Shown: in pieces, positions 5,500 through 42,352 of the stretch
Numbering within the stretch: position 1 is the first letter of the stretch
Layout of the letters: each line of letters starts with the position of its first letter
Source of the DNA: Macrostomum lignano
Lineage: Eukaryota
DNA: 64,000 bases
NCBI GenBank assembly: GCA_002269645.1
Contig: NIVC01001642.1
Coordinates: 1-64,000, forward strand
Direction of reading: 5' to 3'
Notes under the pieces: model-generated
Database searches by the model: none
What the model was told of the DNA's origin: nothing
Seen by the model: only the letters and a program-made list of their open reading frames with translations
Program-made: the position numbers and the translations under genes

Positions 5500-7432
5500 G
5501 GATTAAAGGCTGTTTGAGTAGATTGGGGGCGGATTGATGGCTGTTTGAGTAGATTGGGGGGCGGATTGATGGCTGTTTGAGTCGATTGGGGCAGGGGGCG
5601 GATTGATGGCTGTTTGAGTAGATTGGGGCAGGGGGCGGATTGATGGCTGTTTGAGTCGATTGGGGCAGGGGGCGGATTGATGGCTGTTTGAGTAGATTGG
5701 GGCGGATTGATTGCTGTTTGAGTAGATTGGGGCGGATTGATAGCTGTTTGAGTAGATTGGGGGGCGGATTGATGGCTGTTTGAGTAGATTGGGGGGGCGG
5801 ATTGATGGCTGTTAGAGTAGATTGGGGCGGGGGCGGATTGATGGCTGTTTGAGTAGATGGGGGCGGATTGATAGCTGCTTGGGTAGATTGGAGGCGGATT
5901 GATGGCTGTTAGAGTAGATTGGGGCGGGGGGGGCGGATTGATAGCTGTTTGAGTAGATGGGGGCGGATTGATAGCTGCTTGGGTAGATTGGAGGCGGATT
6001 GATGGCTGTTAGAGTAGATTGGGGCGGGGGCGGATTGATGGCTGTTTGAGTAGATTGGGGCGGATTGATAGCTGTTTGAGTAGATTGGGGGGCGGATTGA
6101 TGGCTGTTTGAGTAGATTGGGGGGGCGGATTGATGGCTGTTTGAGTAGATTGGGGCGGGGGGCGGATTGATGACTGTTAGAGTAGATTGGGGCGGGGGGG
6201 CGGATTGATAGCTGTTTGAGTAGATGGGGGCGGATTGATAGCTGCTTGGGTAGATTGGAGGCGGATTGATGGCTGTTAGAGTAGATTGGGGCGGGGGGGG
6301 CGGATTGATAGCTGTTTGAGTAGATGGGGGGCGGATTGATAGCTGCTTGGGTAGATTGGAGGCGGATTGATGGCTGTTAGAGTAGATTGGGGCGGGGGCG
6401 GATTGATGGCTGTTTGAGTAGATTGGGGCGGGGGGCGGATTGATGGCTGTTTGAGTAGATTGGGGCGGGGCGGATTGATGGCTGTTTGAGTAGATGGGGG
6501 GCGGATTGATAGCTGCTTGGGTAGATTGGAGGCGGATTGATGGCTGTTAGAGTAGATTGGGGCGGGGGGCGGATTGATGGCTGTTTGAGTAGATGGGGGG
6601 CGGATTGATGGCTGTTTGAGTAGATTGGGGGCGGATTGATGGCTGTTTGAGTAGATTGGGGCGGGGGGCGGATTGATGGCTGTTTGAGTAGATTGGGGGG
6701 GCGGATTGATGGCTGTTTGAGTAGATTGGGGGCGGATTGATGGCTGTTAGAGTAGATTGGGGCGGGGGGGGCGGATTGATAGCTGTTTGAGTAGATGGGG
6801 GGCGGATTGATAGCTGCTTGGGTAGATTGGAGGCGGATTGATGGCTGTTAGAGTAGATTGGGGCGGGGGCGGATTGATGGCTGTTTGAGTAGATTGGGGC
6901 GGGGGGCGGATTGATGGCTGTTTGAGTAGATTGGGGCGGGGGCGGATTGATGGCTGTTTGAGTAGATGGGGGGCGGATTGATAGCTGCTTGGGTAGATTG
7001 GAGGCGGATTGATGGCTGTTAGAGTAGATTGGGGCGGGGGCGGATTGATGGCTGTTTGAGTAGATGGGGGGCGGATTGATGGCTGTTTGAGTAGATTGGG
7101 GGCGGATTGATGGCTGTTTGAGTAGATTGGGGCGGGGGGCGGATTGATGGCTGTTTGAGTAGATTGGGGGGGCGGATTGATGGCTGTTTGAGTAGATTGG
7201 GGGCGGATTGATGGCTGTTTGAGTAGATTGGGGCGGGGGGCGGATTGATGGCTGTTTGAGTAGATTGGGAGGGGGCGGATTGATGGCTGTTTGAGTAGAT
7301 TGGGGGGGCGGATTGATGGCTGTTTGAGTAGAGTGGGGCGGGGGGCGGATTGATAGCTGCTTGGGTAGATTGGAGGCGGATTGATGGCTGTTTGAGTAGA
7401 GTGGGGCGGGGGGCGGATTGATAGCTGTTTGA
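5500..7432. repeat. G-rich minisatellite with a ~30-36 bp unit (GATTG[G]nCGGATTGATGGCTGTTTGAGTA) in STK32 intron 2
   Basis: Tandem units carry a variable G run, and a recurring variant unit (ATAGCTGCTTGGGTAGATTGGAGG) is present. A degenerate extension runs from about 5150 to 5500. Confidence 0.95.
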
Positions 7433-7454
7433 GCAGAATTCCAAAACGAACTCA

Positions 7455-7844
<390 letters not shown>

Positions 7845-7994
7845 TCAATTAGTGTAATTAAGTAAGGTACTGTAAATAGACGTGTTTGATAGGATTACGC
7901 ATAAGACTAAACTTTTACTAGCTACGAAGAGACTCGAGAATAAAGGGAAGAGAAATAGGAAAGTACAAGACATGAGAGGCCTAACGGGTAGAAG

Positions 7995-8505
7995 ACAACG
8001 GTGAGGGGGAGACAGGCGAGAGGAGACAGGGAAGAGAAAGACAGGGGAGAGGGGCGAGAGGTAGACAGGAGAGAGGAAGATAGGAGAGAGGATGACAGGG
8101 GAGAACGAGAAAGAAGAGGACAGGGCAGAGGGAGATAGGGGTGAGGAAGACAGGGGAAAGGAAGACAGGGGAGAGGTAATGAAAGAGGTAGACAGGAGAG
8201 GGAGACACGGGAGAGTGAGACAGGGGAAAGGGAGACAGGGAAGACAGAGGCAAGGGTGAGGGAGACAGGGGAAGTGACCCAGGGGAGAGGGAGATAGGGA
8301 GATAGGGGAGAGGGAGACAGGGAGAAGGAAATAGGGGAGAGGGAGACAGGGACAGGGAGACAGTGAGAGGGAGACAGGGAGAGGGAGACAGGGAGAGGGA
8401 GACAGGGAGAGGGAGAGGGAGATATGAGAGAGGGAGAGGAAAGAGGGAGACAGGGAGAGGGAGACAGGGAGAGGGAGATATGAGGGAGATAGGGGAGAGG
8501 GAGAC
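7995..8505. repeat. GA-rich degenerate repeat (GGGAGACA-type) in STK32 intron 1
   Basis: Purine-only tract on the + strand with GGGAGACAGGGAGA units. Confidence 0.9.
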
Positions 8506-8577
8506 ATGGGTAATACAAGCCATAGCAGTATTGTATTCTGATTCCACACAGACTGCTGAATAGCAAACTCCTCAAAC

Positions 8578-20203: not shown

Positions 20204-22883
20204 TTTTTTGTTTGTTGAATAGGGATTTAACCCCAGTGATACATTTTTGTGACCCTGCTTTTTTTAGCTACCGTCAGCCACGCGGTTTACCGTACTCTCT
20301 CCTCAACCCGTCAGCTTTTTTTCCTCTGCAGCAGCCAAACTGACATGTTTGTAGCCGCGCCTTCTAGCCGCACCAAAAAGTAAAACCTATGCCCTAATGA
20401 TAATTTTTATCAGAAACTATACTTCTAGATGATCTAGAAGTAGATTATGATCCTAAATGAATGCCCCAAAACTTTTTTTGATGTTCGAGAAAAATTAGGA
20501 GTAAAAGTTTGTTTTAGGGCGGCTGAAGGGCCGCAGGCTGGAAGGGGGCTAGAGAATTTCATATGCATTTCAGATGTTAAATTACATATTTTACTCGTAA
20601 TAGATGGCCCAACCGATTACAGAAAGCAAATAAGTGAATAACCCCCAAATAGGATAACGACCGAAGTGACACCGTCACATGTTTCTATGGCGACCTAGCG
20701 TGTCTGATATTTAATTTAAGGCACGCAAATATTTAATTAACTATTTTTTGGAACGCACTATACACATGTGCATGGCTGAAATGAAGTGAACTGAATTATT
20801 TAACCCTGATCTAATCAATGATCAATGGTGTCAATTTTAAATTTTTTGTATGTCACTTTTAAGCCTACATATGTAGGTACAATGTTTATTAAAAATTAAT
20901 GTCAGCCTACTGCTAGTGTTAAATTTAATACGATATTAACCTTACCATCTAGCTTTGTCTGTACGTCAGTCAATCTTCGTTTATATCACTAGACCTACGG
21001 AATCAGATAGGCTCGGCTGGGCCTGGGTCTATAAATTTAAATATTATGTTTCGATTGAATCGTTGTCAAATTTTACTGGTGCTCATAAATACGTATAAAG
21101 TATTAAAATACTTTTTAAAATGAAGCTTTAAATTATGCCGTGAAGTGATTTTAATAGGCAAGCTATATAAATTTAAATTAGCTATCTGAATGACTTGAAA
21201 TAATTTTTCTTCATTCTTTAAACTTCAAGGACTTTTCCAGAGACAAGTTTAGTTGTTTAGCTAATTTATGTTTTAGCCTGTCAGGACTCAGCACAGAAGC
21301 AGCCATTCAGAAGCAGTTGTGGCATGCGGGAGACGATTTGTGCAGTCATCTGTAGGCCAGATGAAGGCCAAAAAGTCGCCAGCCCATACATCAGGCAACA
21401 ACTTGAAATATCTTGCAAGATCTTGAGAAACACGTGTGAAATCTTATAAGATCCTTAAAACTTTCTTGCGAAATCTTGTCAGATCTTATCAGATCTGCAA
21501 AAAAAACTTCAAGTCAGATCTTATATTTTTTTAGCAAAAATCATAGGAAATTTTAAGTAAGATCTGTCAAGTTTGCTCAAGTCATTGTCAACTAGGGATT
21601 GTTGTTGAGCCACAAATGTCTGGGTAGGTTATTTGGTTGTTCTCAAGTTTAAATTCACTTATCAATAAGATATGTGCTACCGGTTTTGAACTTAGAGTTG
21701 ATTTTGCGTCCTTAACTCGGGTTGTATTTAACAGTAGAAAGATCACACTGTTTTTCCCCATCGGGAAAGACCACGGGGTGTATTACAAATGCACACGACC
21801 CATTTCACGATAGCTCGCAAACCGAATTACCGATTTTCGTAAAATTCCACCTTTTAAAATCAAAATTTTCGGCCCTCTTAACTTTCAAAGTCATCCAACG
21901 TCACATCCGTCGAGATATTCAACGATTCTTGTCGAAGACACTGGTGGCAAGGACAACCAACACTACACTGTATAAACCTTTATTGTGAATCCATATTGGC
22001 TCAATAATCTGGGTTCATCTGTCTTAGAGCGTAGAGGCCTTTGTTCTCAGCATACCAGGCACCAGGGCCCCCTTCATCTCCATCTGGAGCATCGGCGGCG
22101 ACCGTCGGGACCTTCAACAAAAGCACCCGATTGGCATCTCAGAGACGGCTGCGTTCCCAAAACTGAAATGGAAGAATCCTCTTCTGCATGCAGCATTCAG
22201 TCAGTAGACATAATCAGTGAATGAAATGGACGATGGTGACCCTCTAGGCTGACCTGTAGACATACAGGCGACCTTCGGGACCTTCAACAGTGCCACCACG
22301 CGCCACGTGCCCCGACGAGCTGACACCGCCAGCATGGTGATTTTTCTATCAAGGCACCAAACCAGGCGCGGCATGTCTGCACATTATGCAATGGTCCTGC
22401 ACCATGTTCAGCACTGGTACACTGGACGACCTTCGGGACATTCAATGGAGTGCCACCACGAGGGCCTGACAAGCTGGCACCCCACCATGTTGAACATGGT
22501 GCAGGACCATTCTTCTAGTCTTTCTATTGTTAACTGTCTTGATAAACTTTCTTACTATCCCTGTGTGCTCTTTTGAATAATGTAGTCATTAGAGTTGTTC
22601 TAGTTGTCAGTTAATTTCGTTTTATTTTTTTTAATCAAACGTTTCCAAACACATAAGCATTTATTGTTATTGGTTACATCTCTTGGTTTAGTTGACTTGG
22701 CTTTATCATTTCTTTGATTTATTATTTATTCCGAAAGATTTTGCTTGTAGGCTGTCAATGACGGTGGCTCCCAGTTTCCAAGATTTTTTAACGACGTTAA
22801 GGATTCTGTGTTGTAATTAACTAACGCGAGTTCATTTTTAAAGACTGATAACAGCTCCCTCAAAGAGTAGCTTGAATCCGCCG

Positions 22884-26674: not shown

Positions 26675-27246
26675 CTAACAAATGCCTCCAAGACTCAACG
26701 ACAGCTCATATTCCATCCCGCCGCCACTGTTCAAGTGCCTGCCCAGCTGTAGAGGATGGTTAATCTCAGTTATCTGTCGCGGCCACTCAGTCTTGACAAT
26801 CCTGATGGAGCTGTCCGCAATTACTCGTCGTGGCGGCAGCTCGTCGAACTCCATGGTTCTCTCGCCAGCTTTGAGACAGTTAATCAAGCCGCCAAGTTCT
26901 TTGTCCGTCTGTATGTGGCCTATCCGTGTGCCGTTGTCGATGATAAACATCAATTCGCCGATGTACAACTGGACAGTAATGCGACTATACTCTGTAGCTG
27001 CGATGGTGACTTTATGAATAGTTAGCCACCACCATTCGATGTTGTCTGGGCACAGAAAGTCAGCAACTGCTACAGCTGGAAGTAATTGAAGACAGCCCAG
27101 CAACACCAGCAATGAACACGAGCTGCACAATGCAAGCTGCACGATTTTAGTAGGCTGAAATGTTGTCATTGTTATATATTGGTCCATAAATATATATATT
27201 TGAATTCTACCCACAAAATCAGCACCTAAAACGCAATACTTACCAT
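26675..27246 (-). CDS. Secreted GGxC-family protein 1 (exons 27244-27246 and 26675-27154)
   Basis: ATG|GTAAGT, an 89-nt intron, then TTTCAG|CCT in frame. Hydrophobic signal-like N-terminus, C-PDNIE-WW motif and C-terminal LG-x17-GGIC. Confidence 0.78.
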
Positions 27247-27530
27247 ATCAAACGGCAAAGCTTTGAAGTGGCAATGGAAAACTTGCGTCTATGAAAAAAA
27301 TCCTTTTCAATTTTACGCTCTATAGTATAATATTATATATATGTGCTGATAAAGGTGGAGTGGTATACACTAGAGCGATGTCAAATTCAAAAATAAAATT
27401 TGTTTAAGCGATTGTCTATGGCTTTTGTACATTGTATCGAATGTACTTGTCATCTGTGCGTCTAAAAATAGCGAATTTGACCACTAAAGTTCCACTGAAA
27501 GTGTTGTTGTAAAAAGTTATCTCGAAAAAA

Positions 27531-29531
27531 GGGGATGTCAACTTAAGCACCAGAATGGAGCCCGAAGTTTAGCTCCAGACCAAACCGACTGGAATCGATA
27601 ACTTGTCGACCCAGACGACTAGAATCGCCGAGACATCCCATCCGGGTCCCTTCCTTGGGATACCAGGGGATAAAGGGGATAAAATGGGGATCTCATGTCA
27701 ACTTAAGGCTCTAGAATGGAGCCCAAAACAAGGCTCTCGACCAAACCGACTGGAATCAGCAGATTAGACATTGTTATCGAGAACTCAATGGCAAAGTACA
27801 ATCGGGCACATCCAGGTTTTGAATCATTGAAACAGCTGCCACCGTCATGGACAGGGCTATCGTTGTTCGAATTCCGTTAGAATTTCATGCGCTGAGTGTT
27901 CTTGTCCAACGAACTGGACGAAATTGAGCAGCTGCAACTCAACGGTGATCTGACGCGAGGGCTAACTAACTCCTCTGCTAACACAAGGGCATGGATTTCC
28001 GTCAATCCGCTGGATCCAAAAAGCTGGGGGTTCCCCCGAATTCACACAGACAATTTGACGGAGGTTTCGGTGGGTCCGTATCAACTGTAAGCAACTGAAT
28101 GTAAGCCGATGATTACATTCAAAACATTCGAATTCACACAAGAGAATTTGACAGAGAGTTTTGGTGGGTCCGTCATCAACTAAATCAAGCCGATGATCAA
28201 AACATTCGTGTCAAAAAGGTTCTCGGTAGCTATACGAAGGTCACTCCTGAAGAGACTTTCAGTCGCTCACATCCGAACATCTGAGCCACCTGAAGTGTTG
28301 GAATTTTCGGCAAGAGTCGTCCCAGTCAGAAAACTGAAACAACCTATTCGGTCGGTGGCATCCGTCTTGGATTTTTCTAGCTGTCGTTTTCTCGCGCCAT
28401 AATTCGAAATCTTACCACGTGATTCTTAGAGTGTGTGACAGCAGCGGACAATCGCTTTGGTTTTAGAGATCCAGGATTGCAACTTCCTTCATGGCTACTA
28501 TTCGTCTGCAAAAGCTGGAAATACGACTGCAGGCTGCGATTGTCATGTAATGGCAGTGCTCAAACTCCTGGGCTGCTACGCTTAACCACCAAGATAGCTA
28601 TCGAAGGTCTGGTGCTAGCCTTCGCTTTGTTGATTCCGCTCTTCCACGCAACGCAGGCTTGTTGCCAGAATTTATACCAGAGAAAATGCTTTACCACAGC
28701 AGCGAAAGCCTACTGAGCAACAGTCTAGCAGACAGCATAAGGAGTTTCAGTCAGCCAGCAGCAGCTCACGATCCAAGCCTCAGCCTTCAAGACTATTTGG
28801 TCTTCAAAACCATGGTCAGCAGTGCTATACGCAATTGTTGTTGCACAACTGTTTCACTGCATCAGCAGCAAATTCCAGCTCTTTCAGCCGGTCAGAGGTA
28901 GAGCAGTGAACACCGCAATGACCAACCTGATGACGTCTATGGCGACTGGACCAGCAAGCGTAGATCAACTTGTCAAAGCTATCCGACGCCGATATCCACA
29001 GCAGTTGTCGCCAAGACAGCAACACTCCATGAACGAGGTGCTACAGTGCATTCTGTCAGAGTTGCAGCTGCAGCGTCATTGCCTAAGCGAATTTACACTA
29101 ACCGTACGTGCGGTAGTTGCCTGATTAGCACGGAGGAGTTCTGGATAATCGTATCCTCAGAATCTCCTTGCAGGAGTTTTCAACCGCACTGTTAACTCTA
29201 GACTGTCTGTACGCTGCTTTTACGTCACCAAAGCACGTCCCATGCACTAACACCAACTATGCAGCTGATAGTGCGCTGGAAGTTCAAGTCTCTAACGGCA
29301 GAGTGACCCTGATGCAGAGTGTCCGGAGCTGAACTTCGGGCTCCATTCTAGAGCCTTAAGTTGACATGAGATCCCCATTTTATCCCCTTTATCCCCTGGG
29401 ACCCCAAGGAAGGGACCCGGATGGGATGTTTCGGCGATTCTAGTCGTCTGGGCCGACAAGTTATCAATTGCAGTCGGTTTGGTCCGGAGCTAAACTTCGG
29501 GCTCCATTCTGGTGCTAAAGTTGACATCCCC
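27531..29531. mobile_element. 2.0-kb non-autonomous DNA transposon with ~195-bp TIRs
   Basis: 27531-27726 is the near-perfect reverse complement of 29337-29531, with GGGG...CCCC termini. Each TIR contains two copies of ATGTCAACTTAAG...GAATGGAGCCC. No TSD or transposase was recognised. Confidence 0.88.
28799..29160 (+). pseudogene. Decayed ubiquitin-specific protease (peptidase C19)-like fragment inside the TIR element
   Basis: Cys-box GLQNHGQQCY at 28799-28828. After a frameshift comes VDQLVKAIRRRYPQQLSPRQQHSMNEVLQCIL (QQD-xE-FL-like box), and after a second frameshift RTCGSCLISTEEFWII (finger CxxC). Confidence 0.6.
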
Positions 29532-29673
29532 TTTCTCTTGTTCTCTCTTCTTTCAAAGTCGTTTCGAAAGAAACAGAAAGTAAATGTAATCAGTTTATGT
29601 TAGACTTCAACTTAGTTCGCAACACAGCTTATAAAACAAAAATTTAGAAGCAAAAAAGCAAAGTCTCGAAGGA

Positions 29674-31107
29674 CTAGGATTCCGTGTAAATGCGAAGAAG
29701 AAATTCCAATCGCTTGCCATTCAGCGGCGATTCAGTCTGTGGCACCACCGTGTAATCACCTGGCGGCAGGGACACGCGGAACACTACCGAGCGCTGGTTG
29801 TCTTCGGGGTGTTGAGCCACCTGGTACACGGGTCGCCTCAGACAGTTAGCCCCTTTATAGATGTCAACAGCTTTGACAGAGAATCGTCGCTTTTCTAGCG
29901 GAATGTTGCGCTGCCCCGGCTCTTCCAGACTGATCACAACGGTGGCAACTCCGTCCTGATTGCTTCCATCGCAAAAATTTGTCAGGAACGTGTTGTCCTC
30001 GAAGAATTCGTCAATTTTTTGACCTGGATACCACTCTCCGTAGATGTACTTGCCGTTCCACTCGGCTCCCGTCACGCCGTTGTCCAAATTTCTAGCCAAA
30101 TGCAAAACTGTCAGGAACTCGAAGAACTTCATAAAGTCGGACAGCTCCATCCAGTTCTCACCGTCGTCCTGCTTCACTAATCCAGCTAGCTTCATCTGCT
30201 CGGGCGTCCACCTGGGATCATTGTCGTTCCATTTGCCGCGCCATTCAAATTCGCTTAGCGGCCCCCAGGGATTGCAAATCCGGATCAGATCCACCAGCTT
30301 GCCATTGTGTGGGATCTGCACTGTGCCTGTGACGATGTATTCGTGACCGGACGTCAATCCGAGGCTCTCGAGGTTTTCGCCCAGAATTTCGGTGTGGGTA
30401 GCCGCACCAGCGGACAGTTTTTTTGATAGGCAATACTTAATGTTCTCCAGCACCTTTGCCCCGTCCTCCCGCTTGAATGGGATCAACTCGCACACTCCAC
30501 CAGTGAGGTCGGCCATGGCCTCCAGCTCGAGCCCGCCAATTAGAGACTCATAGCATCCGTGCAGCTTAGCTAGCGCCTTCTCCAACAGGCAGACCCAGTA
30601 CTCGCCCTCGTGCGCCGCGGCGTACACAAGCTGGCCGTCCTTGGTCGGCAGTCTATCGTCCACCATGATCTCCACTTCGCGTCCAAATGGTCGGAAGCGG
30701 AACCGGAAGGCGCCGCAGTAACCTGCACCGCTCAGTGTCTGGTCAGGAAGGATGACCTGGGACAGTAGGTCCGGTCTCTGCGTGATGGCAGCAACAGCAG
30801 CCAAGATCCAGCAGTTCTCCAGTTCGCCTTGATTTATATCAAATCGAGAGAAACCATCTTTGACGAACTCCGGGTCAGCGTCGAGTTCTTTAGGTCGCAG
30901 CCACTTGTAATTGAGCTTCTTGTGAGCATAAGTTAGAGAAGTGTCGTCGGCCGGAAATTCCGGATCTTCAAACAGCCTTTTGCTAGCTCGAAGCTCCCGG
31001 ATTATCTCATTGTTCTTTTCAACGTTCAGAGTTATAAAATTAGTCGTTGACACTCGAAATTGAGAGCAGCTTGCAGTAGAAGGTCTCCAAAACGCCTCTT
31101 GCTGCAT
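29674..31107 (-). CDS. Single-exon calpain (CysPc + domain III, no penta-EF), catalytic triad intact
   Basis: FEDPEFPA, WLRPKE, QGELENCW (Cys), DDRLPT, LLEKALAKLHGCY, GHEY (His) and NPWG (Asn), plus a C-terminal LPPGDYTVVP of domain III. The first ATG is at 31107. Confidence 0.93.
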   Translation of the reverse strand: MQQEAFWRPSTASCSQFRVSTTNFITLNVEKNNEIIRELRASKRLFEDPEFPADDTSLTYAHKKLNYKWLRPKELDADPEFVKDGFSRFDINQGELENCWILAAVAAITQRPDLLSQVILPDQTLSGAGYCGAFRFRFRPFGREVEIMVDDRLPTKDGQLVYAAAHEGEYWVCLLEKALAKLHGCYESLIGGLELEAMADLTGGVCELIPFKREDGAKVLENIKYCLSKKLSAGAATHTEILGENLESLGLTSGHEYIVTGTVQIPHNGKLVDLIRICNPWGPLSEFEWRGKWNDNDPRWTPEQMKLAGLVKQDDGENWMELSDFMKFFEFLTVLHLARNLDNGVTGAEWNGKYIYGEWYPGQKIDEFFEDNTFLTNFCDGSNQDGVATVVISLEEPGQRNIPLEKRRFSVKAVDIYKGANCLRRPVYQVAQHPEDNQRSVVFRVSLPPGDYTVVPQTESPLNGKRLEFLLRIYTES

Positions 31108-31721
31108 GACGTTTGCCAGCAAAACTACTAATAAAATCTGTACAAAGATTAGAAAAAGAGAAGATTATCTCTATTCTCTTTTGAATCAGGGCCGGGTCTT
31201 CTTGAACCCGAGTTCCAAGTTATTTGCACATTTAAATGGGTAAAAAATAGATTTTTCACTGGGAAACCGTATAGTCTATGGAAAAGTCAATCAATTCTAT
31301 GCAGTAGAACACACGTCTAAACCATTTTAAAAATAGCAAAAAACACAAAATATGAACATAAAACAAACGCAGAGCAAATCAAGTTTAGATATTGTGAATT
31401 GATCACATCCCAGATTAATGCGAGTATAGATTTATTGATATTGCAGAATACACCAGGTACAATAGTACGACCTACATTGTATAATTGGCTACATTGTATA
31501 GTTTACCAGCTACGAGTATATCTGTTACTGGATAAATTAGCTCTAATGTTAAAGGGCAACTTTATATTTTAACCTTTGCAATTCACAGACTGTGGAGACT
31601 GTGACAAAAAACGCAGTTTCGAAAAACCTGCCAAACAAACGAAACCGATTTTGATTCTACGAAGTTAGATTGAACGATTTAAACAAAAGGCGTGCATATA
31701 GTCGTGTATAAACAATATGTA

Positions 31722-33895
31722 TTAGGACGCAAAGGGAAGGCCCCTAGCGCGCACGCGTTCGCAGAACAGCTAGGTGGGAGGGGCAGGCAGCAGCAGCCTG
31801 AAGGATCAGCTCAAGCGCCTGCAGGTCAGCGATGAGGCAGTCCTAAAGGCAGTGGCCCAGCAGCATCTGACGGCGACGGCGCAGGGTATCTCTCAGGGAC
31901 TTCCTGCGCGGGCCATCAGAGCGTTGGTCGGCAGGCGCTCCGGGTCCAGGGCTCGCTTTCGCAACTCGGTCAGCGGCACAGCCTCCATGCCGTACAGGAG
32001 GATCGGCTCGACGGCCGCGCGGAACAGGCGCACCTTCAGGTCGTCTCTGGCAGCTGAATTGAAGACGTTCCTGAGGAGGTGCGCGGCGCGCCATAGCCTG
32101 ATTTCTTCTGTAGGAGACAATCGCATTGGGATTCATTACCAGGGCGCCGAGATACCGCGGAAGTCCTCGCACACCTCGATGCGGTCTCCATTGGGCAGCT
32201 TAAGGGTTGGGACGGTATTCATGCCCACGTGCAGCGCCTCCGTCTTGTGAGCAATTACCAGCAGCCCAACACGGGCGCCCTCGTCGCAGAGCCTTGTGAG
32301 AGCTCGCTGGGCAGCCGCTGGAACGCGGCAGAGCAGTGCGATACGCGAGAGAGGGAAGCGAAACAGCAGGGTGTCTGGAGCTTCGGCGTGGGCCCAGCAA
32401 GTAGCTGTCATCCTCGCGGAGGGACCGACGAAGCACGTAGTGCATAACCACGGGGAAGAGCAGAGTAGCCAGCGTGTCACCCTGAAGGACGCCTGGGCTG
32501 GTGCCGAATTCTTCTGTGGGGCCATCGCTCGACATGACAAAAGCCCTGGAGTCGTGGTAGAGGTCAATCACCGCGCTCACCGCGCTCACCAGCGCAGCAT
32601 GTGCGCCATAATGAGATAGAAGCCACGCCTGGACACCGAGTCAAACGCCTTGCGATCTAAGCGCCATCTGAGCGCCTGGGACACGCCTCCTTTGCCGGAA
32701 AAGACAGGCGGCTTCACTTCATCTGCGTCTATGCTCCAACGGCTTCCCGGACCAGCGAAGATCCATCCGTGACAGAAGCCCTTTACGACACTCTGGGCTG
32801 CATGCTTGATTCCATCCCTGCTCGTGACGATCTATCATTGTTGCTGGTGACTTCAACTCGCCATCCAGTTTTATCCAGGCCAGAGATCTGATGGCTGTCA
32901 ATGGCACCATGCGACAGCGCTTCAGCAAGCTTCCAACTTTATTTGGCCCCAACGGGCGAACCACTCGGCTGAACTGGATTTTCTGCCCAACTGCCCTGAG
33001 GGTGCGCAGAGTCCTCAACATCCGCCCCGACTGCGTTCAATCTGATCACCGCCTGATGGCCTGATCTGCACTGGCAGAGACTCCCGCCTGCGCCACCTCA
33101 CCCGCTCTGGGCCGACATGAGAAACCCGGACACGCGGCAGGCCTTCCTACTGCTTACCACTACTCCTGCTCTAGCCCAGTCCTTCGAGTCTTTCCATCAC
33201 GCCGTCGAGGATGCTGCAGCGCTTCTCCCACGGAGACAGGCAAACCCTCCAAAGGCCCTGTGGGACCGCAATTGCATCATCTCCCAGGCAAGGCGGCATG
33301 TGCAGAGCACTGCTGCACTCCACGGCCGTGACAGCAACCAGGCCAGTGCGCTGCCAGGGACGAGCTGCAGTGCATCTACGCCCAGCGGACTGAAGCCTGC
33401 CTGCATCAAAGAAGCTGTGAGCGAAATCCAACTCGCCACTGACAACTGCCGCCATAGTGCTGCCTGGAGAGCCATCAACCAGCTGACTGGCAGGAAGCCC
33501 AGGCCTAACACCATCGTTGGCGCTGATTCCACCGAGCACCGCAAGGCCCCGCTGGCCACCCACTACCGCGAGGTGCTCAACGCGCCCGCTCCAACTGCGC
33601 CTCTTCTGCCGATCCCAGCTACTTCGCTCCAGCTCAGCCAGGCCCTTCAACACCGGCCCCATTACTGTAGGCGAAGTTGACCGAGCACTGAGGACCATGC
33701 GAGCTGATGCTGCCCGCTGGGGTGGACGCCGTCCCTCCCAGGGTCCTGAAGCTGCCCGAGCTCACCCCAATCTTCACCAACCTGCTGAACAAGCACTGCA
33801 GCCTTGGAGGCAACGAGGCCGCCTCGTGCCCAGCCTCAACCAGCTGCTGCTGAGCTCCCAAAGCGGCTTCTACCCGGACAGGCTGACAGATGAGC
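31722..33895. mobile_element. Decayed RTE-clade LINE with a 5' inversion (3' half on minus 31722-32660, endonuclease/linker on plus 32700-33895)
   Basis: The minus part runs from KAFDSV through GDTLA to the RT C-terminus, and its 3' end resembles that of the 53.2-kb element. The plus part runs from DRRLHFICVYAPT to QSGF. There are many frameshifts. Confidence 0.85.
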
Positions 33896-34116
33896 AATTC
33901 ACAGTATTCCTTCATCCATGACCGTAGCTACGAGTATGTACATTTTTATTTTTATTTTTTGTTTAACACGCGAAATTCCATATAGTCTTTGATGTAAAGC
34001 CAGAATGCCAATGGGAAGCGAAACTTGTTAGTCTTAATTAACGAACCCAAAACTTGTGTTTAGAATCAAGATCTTTCATTCCTCGACTTTGTCGTTTTTC
34101 GTTAAAAAGACCAATA

Positions 34117-34705
34117 ATGGTAAGCGCTTAGCGCTCCTGTGACTAAACTGTATTGATGCTTGTCGTATGTCTTCCTTCATTGACGCAATCAGTTTCAGTT
34201 TCAGGCTCAGCACAAGTTGCTGAAGAGATCAACAATATTTGCTGTCATCGTCATTCATCTATACTTGATAATTACGCCATCAAACAAAGCCTTAGGAAGA
34301 CGAAGAGATCAAGAAGAGTTGACCTACTGCAAAGGCAAAATGCGCTGGTGGGTCATAGTCAGACAGAGGGTGACACTGTTCGCTAGCAACTTCGGCGGCG
34401 CCAAAGCTTACATATATTTCAACAGGATTTTGCCTCCCAGTGGCTTACTACAATGGCACAGTTATGAAATGAGACGCCATGTTGCTCCAAATATGGGCGC
34501 AGATGTGGTGTTCCTGGATAAAAATCACTACATAGTGCCAGCTTATAGCTACTATCGACTGCGTCGAATGGCCAGGCTTCGTAAAGGCTCATTCAACGAG
34601 ATCAATGGTCACCTGCTGCTTGGTAGTCACGTTCACATGTACCACTACATGAGGTACGAATACACTACCGTAGACGGTGGCAGCTGTGGCGACACATTCA
34701 CTTAG
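34117..34705 (+). CDS. Secreted GGxC-family protein 2 (exons 34117-34119 and 34205-34705)
   Basis: The track ORF has no in-frame ATG at its start. ATG|GTAAGC at 34117-34119 splices over an 85-nt intron to TTTCAG|GCT in frame. Signal-like N-terminus, C-KGKMR-WW and LG-x17-GGSC. Confidence 0.78.
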
Positions 34706-36190
34706 TTCTCTAGAGATTGAAGAGCTCAGACCAGCTCGTACTGTCTAAATTTCTTCTGGGAGTCTTTCTTGAGTGCGCTTTGAGTTATTCGCAAAAAATA
34801 CATTTAGTATATGAAAATTCAAAACTTTCAATTTTATTAACTCATTTTTGGGTTTTGATTGTTAATTTTCATTTGATAAAAAACGGATCAGTTTGGAGAC
34901 ACTTCGATTTTGTAGCTACTAGTTGTGTCAGACTTTTGCTGATATTTGTAGAGATTCATTAAGTGTTACATTTAGTACTTATAATCTTATTATAGAAATA
35001 AGACCCCGTTTATGACTTAGTCGAACGTTTTTTAAGATTCTCTGTAAATTCAAAGCGGAAATTCCAGCCTCTAATTGCAGTTGCAATCTCAATGCGGCGA
35101 ACGCAAGGACTACTCTAAGTAACATAGGCCCTCGAAATCTCTGCTACACTGCAGAGATAGGAGGTTTTAATTTTTTCAGCACAAACATATTGCTTTTGAT
35201 AGGAGGCAGATCCAGTGTTCATCCTTTGATATGTTGTGCCTTTCTTATTGCTCTATCGATATTCATAAAGCTTTTCGTTCAGAAATAGTTTTAAAGGCAG
35301 CTTTCACCGGAAAAATACACTACGGAGATAAGAAATTTCACGATTTTCAACACTAAAACAGAGATTGGGTCTCTTAACAGTGTCAGAGAAAGTTCTAATC
35401 ACACTATTTTGTGCCCCACATGCTGCTCTAACGACGCATTAATCGATTTTTCATGTTAAATTGGTCTGGTCATTATTTCAAATGTTTTTTAATTGATTTA
35501 GATTTAGAATTCCTTGGTTAACATGTTGCAGATTGTGCATTTTGTTCGAGAAAATCTTTTTTTTCTCACAAGGGAGTCAATTTTCTTACTGCCACATATT
35601 CTTACATGTACTGCTTCATTAAATTTGTGCAGGATCGAGGTCTGCGGTACCCTGACACAAAGCCTTCGGCGAATTCATTCAACAATAGCACTGAAGAAAT
35701 TTTTGCTCATTCCGCTGACTGCTGAGTAGACGATCACACGGTGTGTTCAGCGGCCCTGACCTTCTAATCGTCAGGAATGTACACTATACTCTCTGTGGAG
35801 ACTGGCCCTCATTGTTATAAAATGCACGAAAACCCCCAGGCGATTGTTGCCCTCCCCAGCATGAACACTTTAAATAAGTTATCTTCAGACACTCGTTAGA
35901 TAAACAATGAAAAAGTAGCATATTTTTCGAGATTTTAAAATTAGAAACTTGCAAACTAGAATAAAGTACGGGTCTTTCGAAAAAATGCTGTGATGGTCAG
36001 AAGTTGTTGCAAGAAACTGAAATAATGTTATAGCAGTGAGAGCATTCAACTCAAACTATTTGTTTATGGCATTTCCCTACAAGCAAGATGAAGCAATCGG
36101 TTGAAGTTATTTGCTTAGTTAGATCAAATCGGAAGTTTAAATATTAGGAGACTATTGTCGTCATAATTAATCTTAGTAGCTTTTAGAAAC

Positions 36191-36676
36191 ATGGCACTGC
36201 GATCAAGCAGTTTGCTGCGAGCATTGCTGCTGCTCAGTCAAACATTCAGTTTTGCTTGGCCCACTGACACCTCAGTCAGGCATTGCAGAACGAATTCGCA
36301 CTGGTTGAGATTTAACCTCATCAGCCTGGAGCTTTGGCCCGATCCGGCATCAATCTCGGCGCCAAAGGCGAGCCTGACCTATACAACATTATTCAAATGG
36401 AGCAGCCTTGACGACAAGACCTACCTGAAATTGGAACACCTCCCACTGCCAGATCCAGCCGAGATCAACGGAGTGTACTATTTTAAGCTGAACCAACGAC
36501 AATACAGATCGGTCAGAAGAAGTCTCGCCAACTTGACCGTCAGTTACAATTCGATGTCTGGGCAGGTGAATCGTTACCTGGAGTTCCCGATCGAAATCGG
36601 CAGTCAAAGATTTCAAAATTACTGGATTTCAATTATGTACTTTTCGGCATTTGGCGGTGTTTGTCCTCTCTGTTAA
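36191..36676 (+). CDS. Secreted GGxC-family protein 3
   Basis: Signal-like N-terminus, C-RTNSH-WL and IG-x17-GGVCPLC. A TTTTAG acceptor lies 4 nt upstream of the ATG. Confidence 0.78.
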   Translation: MALRSSSLLRALLLLSQTFSFAWPTDTSVRHCRTNSHWLRFNLISLELWPDPASISAPKASLTYTTLFKWSSLDDKTYLKLEHLPLPDPAEINGVYYFKLNQRQYRSVRRSLANLTVSYNSMSGQVNRYLEFPIEIGSQRFQNYWISIMYFSAFGGVCPLC

Positions 36677-36945
36677 TTTTTTTGGGTTAACGCGCTCCAT
36701 CCCGAGTGCTACTTAAAGTATATGACTTCTTTGCTGCAATCTGTAAACATACAATCGTATAGTCAGATATATCAGATATATGTTACAAGTCATTTCAACC
36801 CTCTGGGGGGCACCAAAAGAAATTCACAAAACGTTCATTAAATAAGCTGCCAAGTTCTGAAGAATTTCTAAATAACTTAATAGTAGATTAGCAATGTCCT
36901 CATAAAGTTTAGCCATTGTCTTATTTGTCTGAATGCTTGAAATAT

Positions 36946-37144
36946 TGTAGCGGGTCGCCATCACAAACCCGAAATATCATAACTCCGAAAACCAAAATAG
37001 CGGTTTGCGTTGCTAACACTGCCGGAGTTATGATTTTTCGGGTTTATGATATTTGAGGTTTATGGTATTTCGGGTTTGTGATGGGCGTTGCTACATGTAA
37101 ATCGGTATTCGAAGTTGTGATTTTTCGGGTTTGTGATGCTCCCC
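36946..37144. mobile_element. Short foldback/MITE-like element built from ATCACAAACCCGAAA motifs
   Basis: Inverted arrays of CATCACAAACCCGAAA / TTTCGGGTTTGTGATG. The boundaries are uncertain. Confidence 0.55.
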
Positions 37145-37175
37145 ATTGTTCTAGTTAAAAATCCATTTTCTGATG

Positions 37176-37751
37176 TCATTTCTGTGGTCTATCGCTCGTG
37201 ATGATGTGGTGCTTTGTGTCATGTTTAACTTTGGTGGCCGGAGGTAGCCGCCCTCCTTCGACGTACGTGAAGGTGCTGCGGTAACGATCGATGAGTGCGC
37301 GTACACGAGGATCGCAGTGGTCTGGATACGCCAGCGACACGGCGAGTTCATCGAGGTCCACTGCGGTAACCGGCAGAGATGGCGTATGTAGTCTCGTTGT
37401 AGGGTCAACTAGTCGACGCCCCTTGCAGTCGACGATCAATTCGAAATGACTGAGGAAGTCGTACCCCAGGATAGGTTGCACGACGGATGCGACCAGGAAC
37501 GTCCAGCGGAATTCACGACGGAGTCCTCGGATGTTGACGTCGAGCGAGATCTCTCCAGCGACCGGTATCGATGCACCGGTGGCGGTGGTCAGGCGAAATC
37601 CGGTCTCCTGAAGGTCCCGGTGGAATTGCTTCTGCGGAATTATCGACACTGCTGCGCCGGTATCGAGCAGGAACGGGTAGTACTTGCTGTCTATCTTGAT
37701 ATCCACCACCAGGAATTTCTTGCTCGCCGCCGGGGATGATGCACTGCTCAC
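37176..37751 (-). CDS. pol: Retrotransposon aspartic protease (pol N-terminus, truncated)
   Basis: FLLDTGAAVSIIP active-site motif and PILGYDFL flap-side motif. It lies in the -1 frame relative to gag. Confidence 0.85.
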   Translation of the reverse strand: MSSASSPAASKKFLVVDIKIDSKYYPFLLDTGAAVSIIPQKQFHRDLQETGFRLTTATGASIPVAGEISLDVNIRGLRREFRWTFLVASVVQPILGYDFLSHFELIVDCKGRRLVDPTTRLHTPSLPVTAVDLDELAVSLAYPDHCDPRVRALIDRYRSTFTYVEGGRLPPATKVKHDTKHHIITSDRPQK

Positions 37752-37774
37752 TGCGGCAGGTTGGGCAGTGCCCT

Positions 37775-38674
37775 CTAGTTTGACGGCTGACGTGTCGGAG
37801 AGGCTGACCTGGACTGTGCAGGTGTCTTTTCGTGAGTACTCAGAATTCGCGGCCGCCTACCACCCAAGGCGGACGGGAAACGACACCACGGTCGGCAGGT
37901 AAGCGCGCGTTCACCGTAGTAGATGTGGGCCCGGCAGACGACCGGACGCTGTCCTGGCTTGAACGGGGTGACGCTTGTCTGTGGCTGCAGTTGTCGGCGT
38001 GGCGGTTCGTCCCGTCTGGAGTTGATAGTCGGCGGTGGCGTCGGCTGTACAGCGCTGACTGAGCTCGCCGAGCTCTGGTAGCTGACCATGAAATCAGCGA
38101 TTTCAGCGAGCTTATCTGGCGATTCCTGCTGGAAGCCTGATAGTGCGACTCGTAGCTCACTGGGCAGGCAGCGGATGAGAGTCGCCTTGAGCATGTCGGA
38201 GCAGGAGCCCATGCCGCACTGAGCCATCTTGGCGCTGAGCTTCTTGACGAAGATTGAGGGCTTGTCGCCACCTAGATCGGACGTGGCCAGGATCTCGTTG
38301 ATCTTCTCCTGCTGACTCTTCTGCAGAAGGTTGGAGATGGCGGCTTTAAGCGGCTCGTACTGTCGAGGCGTTGATGTCGTGATCAGCATCGACGAGATAT
38401 CCTCCGGCAGGTGCGCAACCAAGTAGTGGTACTTGGTCTCGTCCGAAGTTATGCGCGCTAGGTGGAATTGCGACTCTAGGGTCCGGAACCAAGCTTCCGA
38501 ATTGTTCCGGTACAGCGGCGGAACCTTAACGGACACGGCGGACACGCTTGGCTCAAGTATCGGTGGTGTATGTTGAACAGGTAGCTGCCCAGTGGGGTTG
38601 AGCACCGGGGCCTGGTTGTTGTCGGCGGCTGCTGCGGCCTGCTGCGATAGCTGCGGATCGCTTTCGTCGGCCAT
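37775..38674 (-). CDS. gag: Gypsy-type gag-like protein
   Basis: VSVKVPPLYRNNSEAWFRTLESQFHLARITSDETKY N-terminal motif typical of this gag class, and a C-x2-H...C-x3-C terminal motif. Confidence 0.85.
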   Translation of the reverse strand: MADESDPQLSQQAAAAADNNQAPVLNPTGQLPVQHTPPILEPSVSAVSVKVPPLYRNNSEAWFRTLESQFHLARITSDETKYHYLVAHLPEDISSMLITTSTPRQYEPLKAAISNLLQKSQQEKINEILATSDLGGDKPSIFVKKLSAKMAQCGMGSCSDMLKATLIRCLPSELRVALSGFQQESPDKLAEIADFMVSYQSSASSVSAVQPTPPPTINSRRDEPPRRQLQPQTSVTPFKPGQRPVVCRAHIYYGERALTCRPWCRFPSALGGRRPRILSTHEKTPAQSRSASPTRQPSN

Positions 38675-38693
38675 GACGACTCACCGGACCAGT

Positions 38694-39084
38694 TGTAGCG
38701 ACTGTAAAATGAAAAAGGTAGAGCTAGGCGGTGGTTCGCCCTTGTTTGCTTCTTTGTTTGGCACTTGAGTTTCTCGAATATCCAAAGAGGCTTGGAGCAG
38801 ATGCTGGTTTAGCTACTGTATATTTATACTTAATTGACCTTCCGGAAATTTCTAGAATCATTTTAGTGCGGTAAAACAAACTGTATAGTAAGTATCGTAC
38901 GTACGGTATTCATATTTTGTATGATGATGAATTACAGTAAATAAATATTTATTGAGTAGAAATATTTACTACGAGATTAGAAATAGCTAGATAAAGAATA
39001 TTCTAGAATTTAACTGGTACTGTATTGCAGAAATTTCGGGAAGTAAACATCATACGGTATAGAACTTTCGCGAAGGTCACTACA
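38694..39084 (-). repeat. 5' LTR, about 390 bp
   Basis: Starts TGTAGTGAC and ends GCTACA (5-bp inverted termini), contains AATAAA, and abuts a putative PBS and the gag ATG. Confidence 0.75.
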
Positions 39085-39269
39085 GTTACACAGTCAATAA
39101 GCAATATTAAGTGAATATCATTAATAACTTTAAACATTTAACTATACCTTTACCAGTTTTGTGATGCCGTATGCAGTTAAGCGCTGCGTTACCCTTAGGT
39201 TAGCAATAAAGGTTTAGTACAATAGCAGAATCTTCAACAGATAAACAAGACAACAGCACTATAACAAAA

Positions 39270-39581
39270 GTTCACCAACACTTTAGTTCCCCAGCACTTT
39301 AGTTCCCCAGCACTTTAGTTCCCCAGCACTTTAGTTCCCCAGCACTTTAGTTCCCAGCACTTTAGTTCACTTTAGTTTAGTTCACCAACACTTTAGTTCC
39401 CCACTTTAGTTCACCAGCACTTTAGTTCCCCAGCACTTTAGTTCCCCAGCACTTTAGTTCACCAGCACTTTAGTTCACCAGCACTTTAGTTCACCAGCAC
39501 TTAGTTCCCCAGCACTTTAGTTCACCAGCACTTTAGTTCACCAGCACTTTAGTTCCCCAGCACTTTAGTTCCCCAGCACTT
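39270..39581. repeat. 16-bp minisatellite (CAGCACTTTAGTTCCC / CAGCACTTTAGTTCAC)
   Basis: About 19 copies read directly. Confidence 0.95.
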
Positions 39582-39958
39582 ATCGTGTCAAAAGCAAGTA
39601 GTGCAAGGAGCAGTGCAAGTCCCAATGCAAATCCAGAGTGAAAAAAACACTTTTGCCAGCATTTCCACCGGTAGATATTCGACATTTATCCGCGCTTTTT
39701 GAGATATTGAGCAACACATGAGGATCTGACATGGAGTAGTTCGTATGCAGATTTTAGGAAAATCAATTTCTTTGAACCATGAGCTCTATAGCATTGGGAC
39801 ACTCAGATAAAAAGTATCTGGACTTTTTACCATTACGCCATATACTCGTAATGGAGCATTGGGGTGGCAAAGTGCCAAAATGACAAAGAAAAAGTCGAAA
39901 GCTACCGTCAATAAAATAGTTTTCATTGAAACAGTTAGTTATTTACCTGTTAGCGCAG

Positions 39959-40663
39959 TTATTTCAAGCAGATTGGACACAAGCCACCTTTTCTTGTATG
40001 GTATGTGTAGGACATATTCTTAATGCTTACAGTGTGATAACCAAGAAATATCTTCACTTTCATTCTGACCACTTGACCGGACCAATCAATCAGCGAGATT
40101 CGCGCGTAACTGTACGCCAGAACAAAGAAAATATTTTTCTTGCCGTTCATAAGTGTCCAACCATTGAAAGAGCGCTTTTGTTCCAGACGCATTCGCTGCT
40201 TGGTGTAGCGCACCAACGTCAGTGTGGAGTGCCTGTCGTCGTTCTGATTTGAAACTTCATAAAACTCCACGTAAGCTGCATCCGTATAGGAAATTTTGGA
40301 TTTAACGTAGAGAACATGCGCAACGAGCATCCAATATTCGGTACCATCCTCACAGATCTCGTGCCCCAGAACATAACTAGCCGGCAGCAAGATGGACTGA
40401 GATACAATGATTGCCACCAGTATACGGAGTATTGTGATCATGGGCGACGACATCTGGGTGGATTGGTAAAACAATGGGTGGCTTATTGCCTATGCGCGTG
40501 AAGCTTTGAGGTAATGTCAGGCTATTTTAGTACATCGGCATGCGTTTATTGTCGAGTTTCAGGCTTATGGTAGACTATGGCATGTTGTTGAATCGTTAAT
40601 ACTTGTTAGACTTTGTTCTGAATTTCTATTATTCTGCAACAGACAGAAGAGAAAACTTACCAT
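39959..40663 (-). CDS. Secreted GGxC-family protein 4 (probable exons 40661-40663 and 39959-40453)
   Basis: ATG|GTAAGT at 40663-40661 and an acceptor CCACCCAG|ATG at 40453 in frame. Signal-like N-terminus, C-EDGTE-YW and LG-x17-GGLCPIC. Confidence 0.78.
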
Positions 40664-40966: not shown

Positions 40967-42352
40967 TCACGTGAACACTCGAAGCAAAAACTCCACCCTG
41001 TTGCCTTCAATCAGGGTCTCAATGCGAGGAATGACAACATAATCGCCAGGTCGCAGACTTGCTCTTGAAACAAATTGTCTTTCCAACTCCGTTCCCGTGA
41101 ATCGCATCAAAGGTTCGCCTTCGGGCAACTTTCCCGGATAAATTTCAATGATTTTCTTGGCGAATTCCGAGCCATCAGGGTACAGATGGCGTCGTTCGCC
41201 CTCTTCCAAACTGATAATGACGTACGCCGACCCATCCGGATTTGCTGACGCACCGGAAACGGTAAAGCTGAAGCGGTCGTCATGATAGAACTCATCTGGA
41301 CCCTGGTTCATTGTCCACGCTCCGTAGACCTTCTTGCCAGTCCACTCTGACCCGGTCACGCCGCAGTCTAAATTTCTGGCCAAATGAAGAATTTGAACGG
41401 ACTCAAACATTCGCACGAAATCAGACAACTCAATTGTAGTTTCACCTTCTGTAGCATTGGCTTGCAACTGGTACCAGTCGGATGACAAGCGGGTATATTC
41501 TTGATCTAGCAAAGCTCTTCTATAATCCAAAATCTTCACAACATCGATTGAACTGCCGTCCCGTGGAACCTGAGCAGTGCCGCTAATAATATAATGGCCT
41601 CCTGGCGGCAGATCGGGCAATTTTTTCATGCATTTTTCAGCGTCATCGCTGCTTTCATTGCGTGCACAGAACGCTTCAACGATCAGTTCCCGTTTTAAAG
41701 CTGACTGCAATATTTTCAGTAAATCGTCCACCTTGATTTCTCTTACATAGATCTCTTCGCAAACTCCACCAGTGAGTAGTGGCAATAGCTCTAACGATGC
41801 GCAAGTTGGTACATCTTCGTATGAGCCGAACAGCTTAGCAAAAGCCTTCTCGAGTAGGCACAGCCAGAACTGGCCACGGTGAGTTCCGGAAAACGCTAGT
41901 TCCCCGTTTATAGTAGGGAGCCGATCGTCAATAGTGAGCTCAAATTCTTGGCCAAATTGGCGAAAGATGAAGCGAACAGAGCCGTCATAGTTCTTGCCGT
42001 GCAGTGTCTGACCCGGTGGAATAACGCTGTGTAAGAGGTCCTGCCGATTTCCGATTTGGGCTAGACATAGTAATAAGCAATAGTTGGCACTTTGACCTCT
42101 GACGTTCGCGTTGAATCCCGACCCGACGTTAACGTCTCCGACCTCGAACAGTAGTGCTGTGCCATTTCCGGTCATTTCGTGCGGCCTTAGCCAGACTAAA
42201 GGTTTAGAATGGTATCTTCCTGATGTCGAATGGGCCTGATGCTCATCATCCTGTCCAGCATGTACAGAACTGTAATCGGCTGGAAATTCCGAATCTTTAA
42301 GCGGCTTTTCTCCGGGTTTCAGCTTTTTAAACGCTTTGAAAAGTCTCTTCAT
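40967..42352 (-). CDS. Single-exon calpain-like protein, predicted catalytically inactive
   Basis: Collinear paralog of 29674-31107 (SEFPADY, WLRPHE, DDRLPT, LLEKAFAKLFGSY, HLARNLD.GVTG.EW). QGELENCW becomes RGQSANYC, GHEY becomes GGHY and CNPWG becomes LDYRR. Confidence 0.88.
   Translation of the reverse strand: MKRLFKAFKKLKPGEKPLKDSEFPADYSSVHAGQDDEHQAHSTSGRYHSKPLVWLRPHEMTGNGTALLFEVGDVNVGSGFNANVRGQSANYCLLLCLAQIGNRQDLLHSVIPPGQTLHGKNYDGSVRFIFRQFGQEFELTIDDRLPTINGELAFSGTHRGQFWLCLLEKAFAKLFGSYEDVPTCASLELLPLLTGGVCEEIYVREIKVDDLLKILQSALKRELIVEAFCARNESSDDAEKCMKKLPDLPPGGHYIISGTAQVPRDGSSIDVVKILDYRRALLDQEYTRLSSDWYQLQANATEGETTIELSDFVRMFESVQILHLARNLDCGVTGSEWTGKKVYGAWTMNQGPDEFYHDDRFSFTVSGASANPDGSAYVIISLEEGERRHLYPDGSEFAKKIIEIYPGKLPEGEPLMRFTGTELERQFVSRASLRPGDYVVIPRIETLIEGNRVEFLLRVFT

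Follow-up and report, generated by a model that had tools for sequence, protein, structure and literature searches.

The stretch of DNA analysed here (the window: 64,000 nucleotides, positions 1 to 64,000 of contig NIVC01001642.1 in assembly GCA_002269645.1 of the flatworm Macrostomum lignano) carries, besides numerous retrotransposon fragments and minisatellites, two calpain genes and a cluster of four small genes, referred to below as m1 to m4. A sequence-only reading of the window had proposed that the four open reading frames (ORFs) encode an unnamed, fast-evolving family of secreted proteins, closed by a disulfide between the N- and C-termini and ending in an invariant [LI]G-x17-GG-x-C motif, with a seminal, mucus, immune or toxin effector as examples of what they might be. 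All four ORFs were found where that reading had placed them, although the outer bounds of m1, m2 and m4 take in a one-codon exon and an intron in addition to the main coding exon. The four genes are as follows.

26675..27246, minus strand: m1 (Mlig004263), 160 amino acids; defined by its ORF and splice junctions, with a match to the family hidden Markov model (HMM) at 7e-42
34117..34705, plus strand: m2 (Mlig010399), 167 amino acids; the spliced product (MAQHKLLK...) is the deposited protein P0002/P0007
36191..36676, plus strand: m3 (Mlig010834), 161 amino acids; identical to the NCBI protein P0005
39959..40663, minus strand: m4, about 177 amino acids; C-terminus GGLCPICLK*; carries no annotation

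The spliced product of m1 is identical to the deposited protein P0003 and has the C-terminus ...LGRHLNSGGGMEYELSLSLGGIC, while m3, the most divergent of the four, ends in GGVCPLC. The proteins of m1, m2 and m3 have thus been deposited already, in each case as 'hypothetical protein'.

The family and its relatives

A six-frame translation of the 64-kb window contains four matches to the slightly relaxed motif [LIVM]G-x17-GG-x-C, all of them in the ORFs of m1 to m4, and in each ORF the motif ends 0 to 6 residues before the stop codon. In 300 composition-preserving block shuffles of the window the same motif occurred 0.087 times on average and never more than once, so that the family observation is real and far beyond chance, and the C-terminal signature of the sequence-only reading is confirmed in all four members. 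The second signature, C-x5-[WY][WL], is likewise present in four of four, with its Cys 124, 119, 126 and 125 residues from the C-terminal Cys in m1 to m4 respectively, in agreement with the spacing of 119-126 residues noted earlier. Pairwise BLASTP comparisons of the mature parts show that homology reaches beyond the motif: most pairs are significant (m1-m4, 1e-6; m1-m2, 4e-5; m2-m4, 5e-5; m3-m4, 5e-5), with m3 an outlier that is tied to the rest chiefly through m4. The four members form a genuine paralogous family and share 15-32% identity. A search for a fifth member, in which the HMM was run over every six-frame ORF of the window and its related loci, gave only the same four per locus.

When 1.84 billion representative proteins were searched exhaustively with the family profile, the matches were the three M. 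lignano proteins already annotated and a single further sequence, P0004, a protein of 153 amino acids (E=2.4e-6) encoded on a Logan contig of the SRA run SRR29421764:

979-1440 of the 1723-bp SRR29421764 contig: P0004 gene, intronless, with AT-rich flanks

P0004 has a classic signal peptide followed by C-P-S-G-T-E-W-W, and ends in LG-x17-AG-R-C-P instead of GG-x-C. Pairwise E-values are 3e-13 with m2 and 1.6e-10 with m1; at the nucleotide level, the contig shows no similarity to the window. Word-indexed searches, a search with P0004 as query and a metagenome scan gave no further homologues. The profile used in the exhaustive search was built without P0004, so more distant flatworm relatives may exist. 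Pfam gave no match for m1 to m4 at E<=1, nor for the five mature sequences (m1 to m4 and P0004) at E<=10, and all PDB sequences, searched with the profile at E<=10, gave none either. The earlier impression that the proteins contain no named domain is therefore upheld, and the family is, as far as current databases go, close to being an orphan.

The only invariant columns in the alignment of the five sequences are C, G, S, G, G and C. Both Cys residues pointed out by the sequence-only reading are common to all members; as a correction to it, m1, m3 and m4 carry a third. This third Cys is positioned mid-chain in m1 and within a C-terminal C-P-x-C in m3 (CPLC) and m4 (CPIC). The C-P-x-C ends of m3 (36653-36676) and m4 (39959-39988) could be a site for a CxxC-type or an intermolecular disulfide.

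Start-codon splicing, locus copies and selection

The m3 gene has no intron. In m1, m2 and m4 the first exon is a single codon followed directly by the splice donor (ATG|GTAAG), and an AG acceptor 85-170 nt downstream restores the reading frame; this one-codon exon and its GT-AG intron account for the outer coordinates of the three ORFs. In m1 the ATG (27246-27244) ends exon 1, the intron (GT..AG) spans 27243-27155 and exon 2, including the stop codon, 27154-26675. In m2 the ATG lies at 34117-34119, the intron at 34120-34204 and exon 2 at 34205-34705; as no in-frame ATG precedes the signal-like segment of the ORF, the start codon of m2 can come from splicing only. In m4 the ATG (40663-40661) is followed by an intron at 40660-40490 and exon 2 at 40489-39959, with an alternative in-frame acceptor at 40454. 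The sequence ATGGTAAG occurs four times in the 64 kb: three of these sites are the starts of m1, m2 and m4, likewise conserved in both of the further locus copies described below, and the fourth, at 20941-20948, has no ORF downstream. The surroundings of the start exon are alike in m1 and m4 (GCYGTTTGnnATGGTAAGT).

The spliced leader of M. lignano ends in ...TTGCATG, and in its gene the donor GTAAG follows (PMC8629364). Given this junction, TTGCATG|GTAAG, the cis exon of m1, m2 and m4 copies the spliced-leader junction. If the transcripts were also trans-spliced at the same acceptor, the leader ATG would be expected to yield an identical protein. No spliced-leader gene was found within the window.

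The locus is present in the assembly as three homeologous and near-identical copies, in the window, in NIVC01002721.1 and in NIVC01004424.1; multiple copies are to be expected, as the M. lignano genome is partly duplicated (PMC5730564). Flanking DNA differs by 1-6% among the three loci, with many indels and differences in transposon presence or absence. All 12 ORF copies (four members in three loci) are intact, with no indel and no stop. Pooled over the copies, 17 variable positions are synonymous and 15 non-synonymous, against 443 synonymous and 1543 non-synonymous sites, giving a non-synonymous/synonymous ratio of 0.25 and, by a binomial test across the three locus copies, p=1.4e-4 for the non-synonymous deficit. 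The ratio and the deficit together show purifying selection on the family.

The description of the family as fast-evolving is consequently not borne out, this being the sole rate test made and one confined to the three locus copies; the divergence of the paralogs, at 15-32% identity, may simply reflect age. The same result bears on the idea that m1 to m4 serve reproduction (seminal fluid or prostate gland) or some other gland secretion and evolve rapidly under positive selection, which we regard as distinctly unlikely. Small secreted-looking proteins, a tandem gene cluster, low identity between paralogs and the near absence of homologues outside the species would all suit such a family, and reproduction-related genes are reported to be fast-evolving in the genus Macrostomum (PMC7336406), but the only rate measured here is that of purifying selection. 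The identifiers Mlig004263, Mlig010399 and Mlig010834 were not found in the literature text or supplements searched, which speaks weakly against a reproductive role, coverage of the supplements being partial.

RNA-seq assemblies, with ORFs called by TransDecoder, are the sole basis of the Mlig_3_7 annotation (PMC5730564), and the models Mlig004263, Mlig010399 and Mlig010834 therefore imply transcripts with the splicing described above. Three of the four members thus have RNA-seq-derived gene models, where an absence of transcription had been named as the outcome that would count against the family. The protein collection lacks the 164-residue product that m4 would give from an internal ATG (40453), and neither of the other two loci has a gene call at the m4 position; m4 appears to have escaped annotation. 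Its ORF is intact in each of the three loci, with ATG|GTAAG conserved, but of the four members m4 shows the weakest constraint.

That the ORFs are non-functional, either decaying duplicates or transposon-associated frames open by chance, is largely refuted and in our judgement extremely improbable. The region is rich in transposon fragments (reverse transcriptase, gag and protease), and m4, besides being unannotated, has four non-synonymous changes to one synonymous in one comparison. Twelve copies free of indels and stops, a significant non-synonymous deficit, conserved splice sites, three transcript-derived models and a homologue in another organism with the same framework of motifs (C-x5-WW ... 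LG-x17-[AG]G-x-C) are nevertheless hard to reconcile with decay or chance.

Predicted secretion and fold

Each of the four members has a hydrophobic 10-mer before the first Cys (mean Kyte-Doolittle value 1.85-3.13), followed by small residues at the -3 and -1 positions of a putative cleavage site (AVA|D, ALG|R, SFA|W and VLG|H). Together with P0004, five proteins have the features of a signal peptide in n-region charge, hydrophobic core and -3/-1 residues, as judged by a home-made hydrophobicity and -3/-1 test rather than a trained predictor. In m2 the sequence RRR directly follows the predicted cleavage site. The signal-like N-termini of the sequence-only reading are thus confirmed by this check in all four members, and from them we infer that the proteins are secreted.

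AlphaFold2 modelling of mature P0004, using the five-sequence alignment, gave a best model with a predicted local distance difference test score (pLDDT) of 81.1 and a predicted template modelling score of 0.74. This model is built of 10 strands without a helix, in support of the beta-rich body that had been proposed, here by way of a homologue. The 17-residue spacer corresponds to the last hairpin of the model, formed by strands 109-115 and 118-129, and a short strand immediately precedes the first conserved Cys. Indels in the alignment do not exceed 1-3 residues in the C-terminal half (beta 6-9) and are similarly small in the first strand, with the largest insertions in loops. Gaps in the middle of the alignment clip the ends of predicted strands, making this middle region uncertain. 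The two Cys residues are the sole invariant Cys in the five sequences, on which basis a disulfide between the N- and C-termini is predicted and plausible.

When the P0004 model was compared with the PDB using Foldseek, the best matches were all C2 domains, with E-values of 3e-3 to 6e-2, template modelling (TM) scores of 0.41-0.48 and probabilities of 0.9-1.0; they include 3w56, the C2 domains of cPLA2 (6iej, 1rlw), E-Syt C2B (7a1r), PTEN C2 and perforin (7pag). No match to the PDB was found for this model at E<=1e-3, and a viral structure library gave no meaningful match to it. The model suggests a beta-sandwich whose nearest known shape is C2-like, with membership of the C2 superfamily not demonstrated.

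These matches raise the alternative that the family belongs to a known superfamily, as a very diverged, stand-alone secreted C2-type membrane-binding domain of the perforin or cPLA2-like kind. C2 domains (PF00168) are compact all-beta sandwiches of about 125 residues, as the family is predicted to be, and are uniformly its nearest fold; their N- and C-terminal strands are adjacent, an arrangement that would suit a disulfide joining the two termini. We nonetheless consider this unlikely, as TM-scores below 0.5 are accompanied by root-mean-square deviations of 6-8 Å, there is no Pfam C2 match even at E<=10, and no column of the five-sequence alignment conserves the Asp or Glu residues of Ca2+-binding loops. 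The family further differs from C2 domains in the terminal Cys pair, in its proposed existence as a stand-alone secreted protein, and in a model of 10 strands, not eight.

Two other groups of small secreted beta proteins, named beforehand as examples of known families to which a confident match would refute the proposal, offer likenesses that did not extend to a match. The ML domain (NPC2, Der p 2; PF02221) is a small, secreted, disulfide-bonded beta-sandwich of about 130 residues and Ig-like fold; a small secreted sandwich with a disulfide is also predicted for the family here, and ML genes often form lineage-specific tandem families reminiscent of the m1 to m4 cluster. ML domains, however, carry several conserved disulfides and not a single N-to-C pair, and neither a Pfam match at E<=10 for the five members nor an ML structure among the top 50 Foldseek matches of the P0004 model was found. 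Lipocalins and other calycins are secreted beta proteins with an N-terminal G-x-W in the first strand and a disulfide that fixes the C-terminus, the lipocalin fold being an eight-stranded barrel with a C-terminal helix; the G-T-E-W-W of the family resembles this G-x-W-like motif. The lipocalin family (PF00061) gave no Pfam match and does not appear among the top 50 Foldseek matches, and, unlike lipocalins, the proteins considered here have a mature length of about 125 residues and no C-terminal helix in the model.

We favour, as a reasonably probable account of the whole, that m1 to m4 are old paralogs forming a functional, lineage-restricted family of secreted all-beta binding modules. Each gene would produce a precursor of about 160-177 residues with a cleavable signal peptide, and the mature protein, about 125-130 residues, would form one all-beta sandwich domain. 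A disulfide from the Cys of C-x5-WW to that of GG-x-C would tie the first and last strands together, and the fixed 17-residue spacer would be the final beta-hairpin, consisting of a strand, a tight turn and a second strand. The product would be a stable extracellular module for binding lipid or membrane, glycan or protein, with the variable loops conferring a specificity particular to each paralog.

Several points weigh against this account. The gene m4 has no annotated transcript, and the one pairwise comparison with four non-synonymous changes and one synonymous gives it a pN/pS (the non-synonymous/synonymous ratio per site) of about 1. The number of Cys residues is odd in m1, m3 and m4. The five AlphaFold2 models of P0004 range in pLDDT from 46 to 81, the remaining four lying at 46-70, so that confidence in the P0004 fold is moderate; modelling of m1 itself with four sequences was unusable (pLDDT 37), and for the members in the window the sandwich fold is a prediction carried over from the homologue. 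The binding role is suggested by the anatomy of the sequences and by general knowledge of small secreted beta-sandwich domains.

The calpain neighbourhood and the place of the family

The features that surround m1 and m4 are the two calpain genes and an inserted element.

29674..31122, minus strand: calpain A (Mlig005293), Peptidase_C2 and Calpain_III domains, Pfam 6.6e-87
40967..42352, minus strand: calpain B, Peptidase_C2 and Calpain_III domains, 37% identical to calpain A
27528..29534: inserted element, about 2 kb, bounded by 200-nt terminal inverted repeats that are 96% complementary

The catalytic Cys, His and Asn are intact in calpain A. When calpain B is aligned to it, these residues are replaced in register by Tyr, Gly and Asp respectively, and calpain B is for this reason probably a catalytically dead pseudo-protease; its annotated model in the other loci has only 304 residues. 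On the same strand, m1 lies downstream of calpain A across a gap of 2.4 kb, and the start codon of m4 lies 304 bp downstream of the stop codon of calpain B. Most of the gap between calpain A and m1 is taken up by the inserted element, which two locus copies have and the third lacks, and which is thus probably a DNA transposon insertion; in the copy that lacks it the gap between calpain and m1 is about 350 bp. The shared start exon of m1 and m4, the paralogy of the calpains and the same-strand adjacency suggest an old duplication of a unit comprising a calpain and a small gene, with m2 and m3 arising between.

Two further relationships with the calpains were considered and rejected. Domain III of calpain (C2-like; PF01067) is a beta-sandwich, as the family is predicted to be, and is encoded immediately upstream of m1 and m4; an origin of the family from it finds no support, however, in profile-profile comparison (hhalign probability 0.11%, E=0.5, 12 columns), in Pfam (no Calpain_III match) or among the top 50 fold matches, which include no calpain chain. 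An operon with calpain was rejected on the names of the transcription units, which differ (Mlig005293 for calpain A, Mlig004263 for m1).

Bacterial staphopain-staphostatin gene pairs provide an analogue for a cassette in which a protease is encoded beside a small partner. The small proteins could on this model be partners of the calpains, as inhibitors or chaperones, duplicated as a two-gene cassette, and the arrangement of m1 after calpain A and of m4 after calpain B, ancestral gaps of about 300-400 bp once the transposon is discounted, the common start-exon sequence and the 37% identity of the calpains are all what such a duplication would leave. It is very unlikely all the same, and no sign of a functional link emerged. 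The small proteins have a signal peptide and the calpains have none, so the two should occupy different compartments; m2 and m3 adjoin no calpain; calpain A and m1 have separate transcription-unit names; no calpain lies within 980 bp upstream of P0004; and at an hhalign probability of 0.1% there is no sequence relation to domain III. A more ambitious combination, in which an undescribed and distantly C2-like extracellular fold arose and was duplicated in a two-gene cassette with a calpain or pseudo-calpain, works with or against the protease and is expressed from a cis- or trans-spliced start, we likewise hold to be highly improbable; if true, the cassette would give eukaryotes an equivalent of the staphopain-staphostatin type of protease-inhibitor gene pair.

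Other elements of the window were noted alongside these genes. A retrotransposon fragment at 37169-39085 (a DUF7041 gag-like ORF and an aspartic protease) lies between m3 and m4, and is present in the window and in NIVC01004424.1 and absent from NIVC01002721.1. About 380 bp downstream of the m4 stop codon, at 39269-39581, is a 16-nt tandem repeat, AGTTCCCCAGCACTTT, in about 20 copies, the number of which varies among the three loci. Long purine- or G-rich minisatellite arrays with 17-, 31- and 15-nt units and a strong GC skew of about +0.5 occupy 2751-8510, and give rise to minus-strand ORFs that are long but spurious.

The family is real, was rightly bounded by the sequence-only reading and is unnamed, and its members are functional genes. 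Though new as a family, it represents a well-known sort of protein, the lineage-restricted and here probably secreted beta protein, rather than a novel type of system. It has no bearing on a long-standing open question, and a specialist would expect many such families in the genome. If confirmed, one defined family would be added to the many lineage-restricted secreted flatworm proteins that are still uncharacterised, and a beta domain without a solved relative, probably stapled by a disulfide, would be of modest interest for structure databases. M. lignano allows transgenesis, RNA interference and in situ hybridisation, and because these tools can be brought to a compact cluster whose paralogs are distinct in sequence, roles for the family in gland secretion, mucus, immunity or reproduction should be easily testable.

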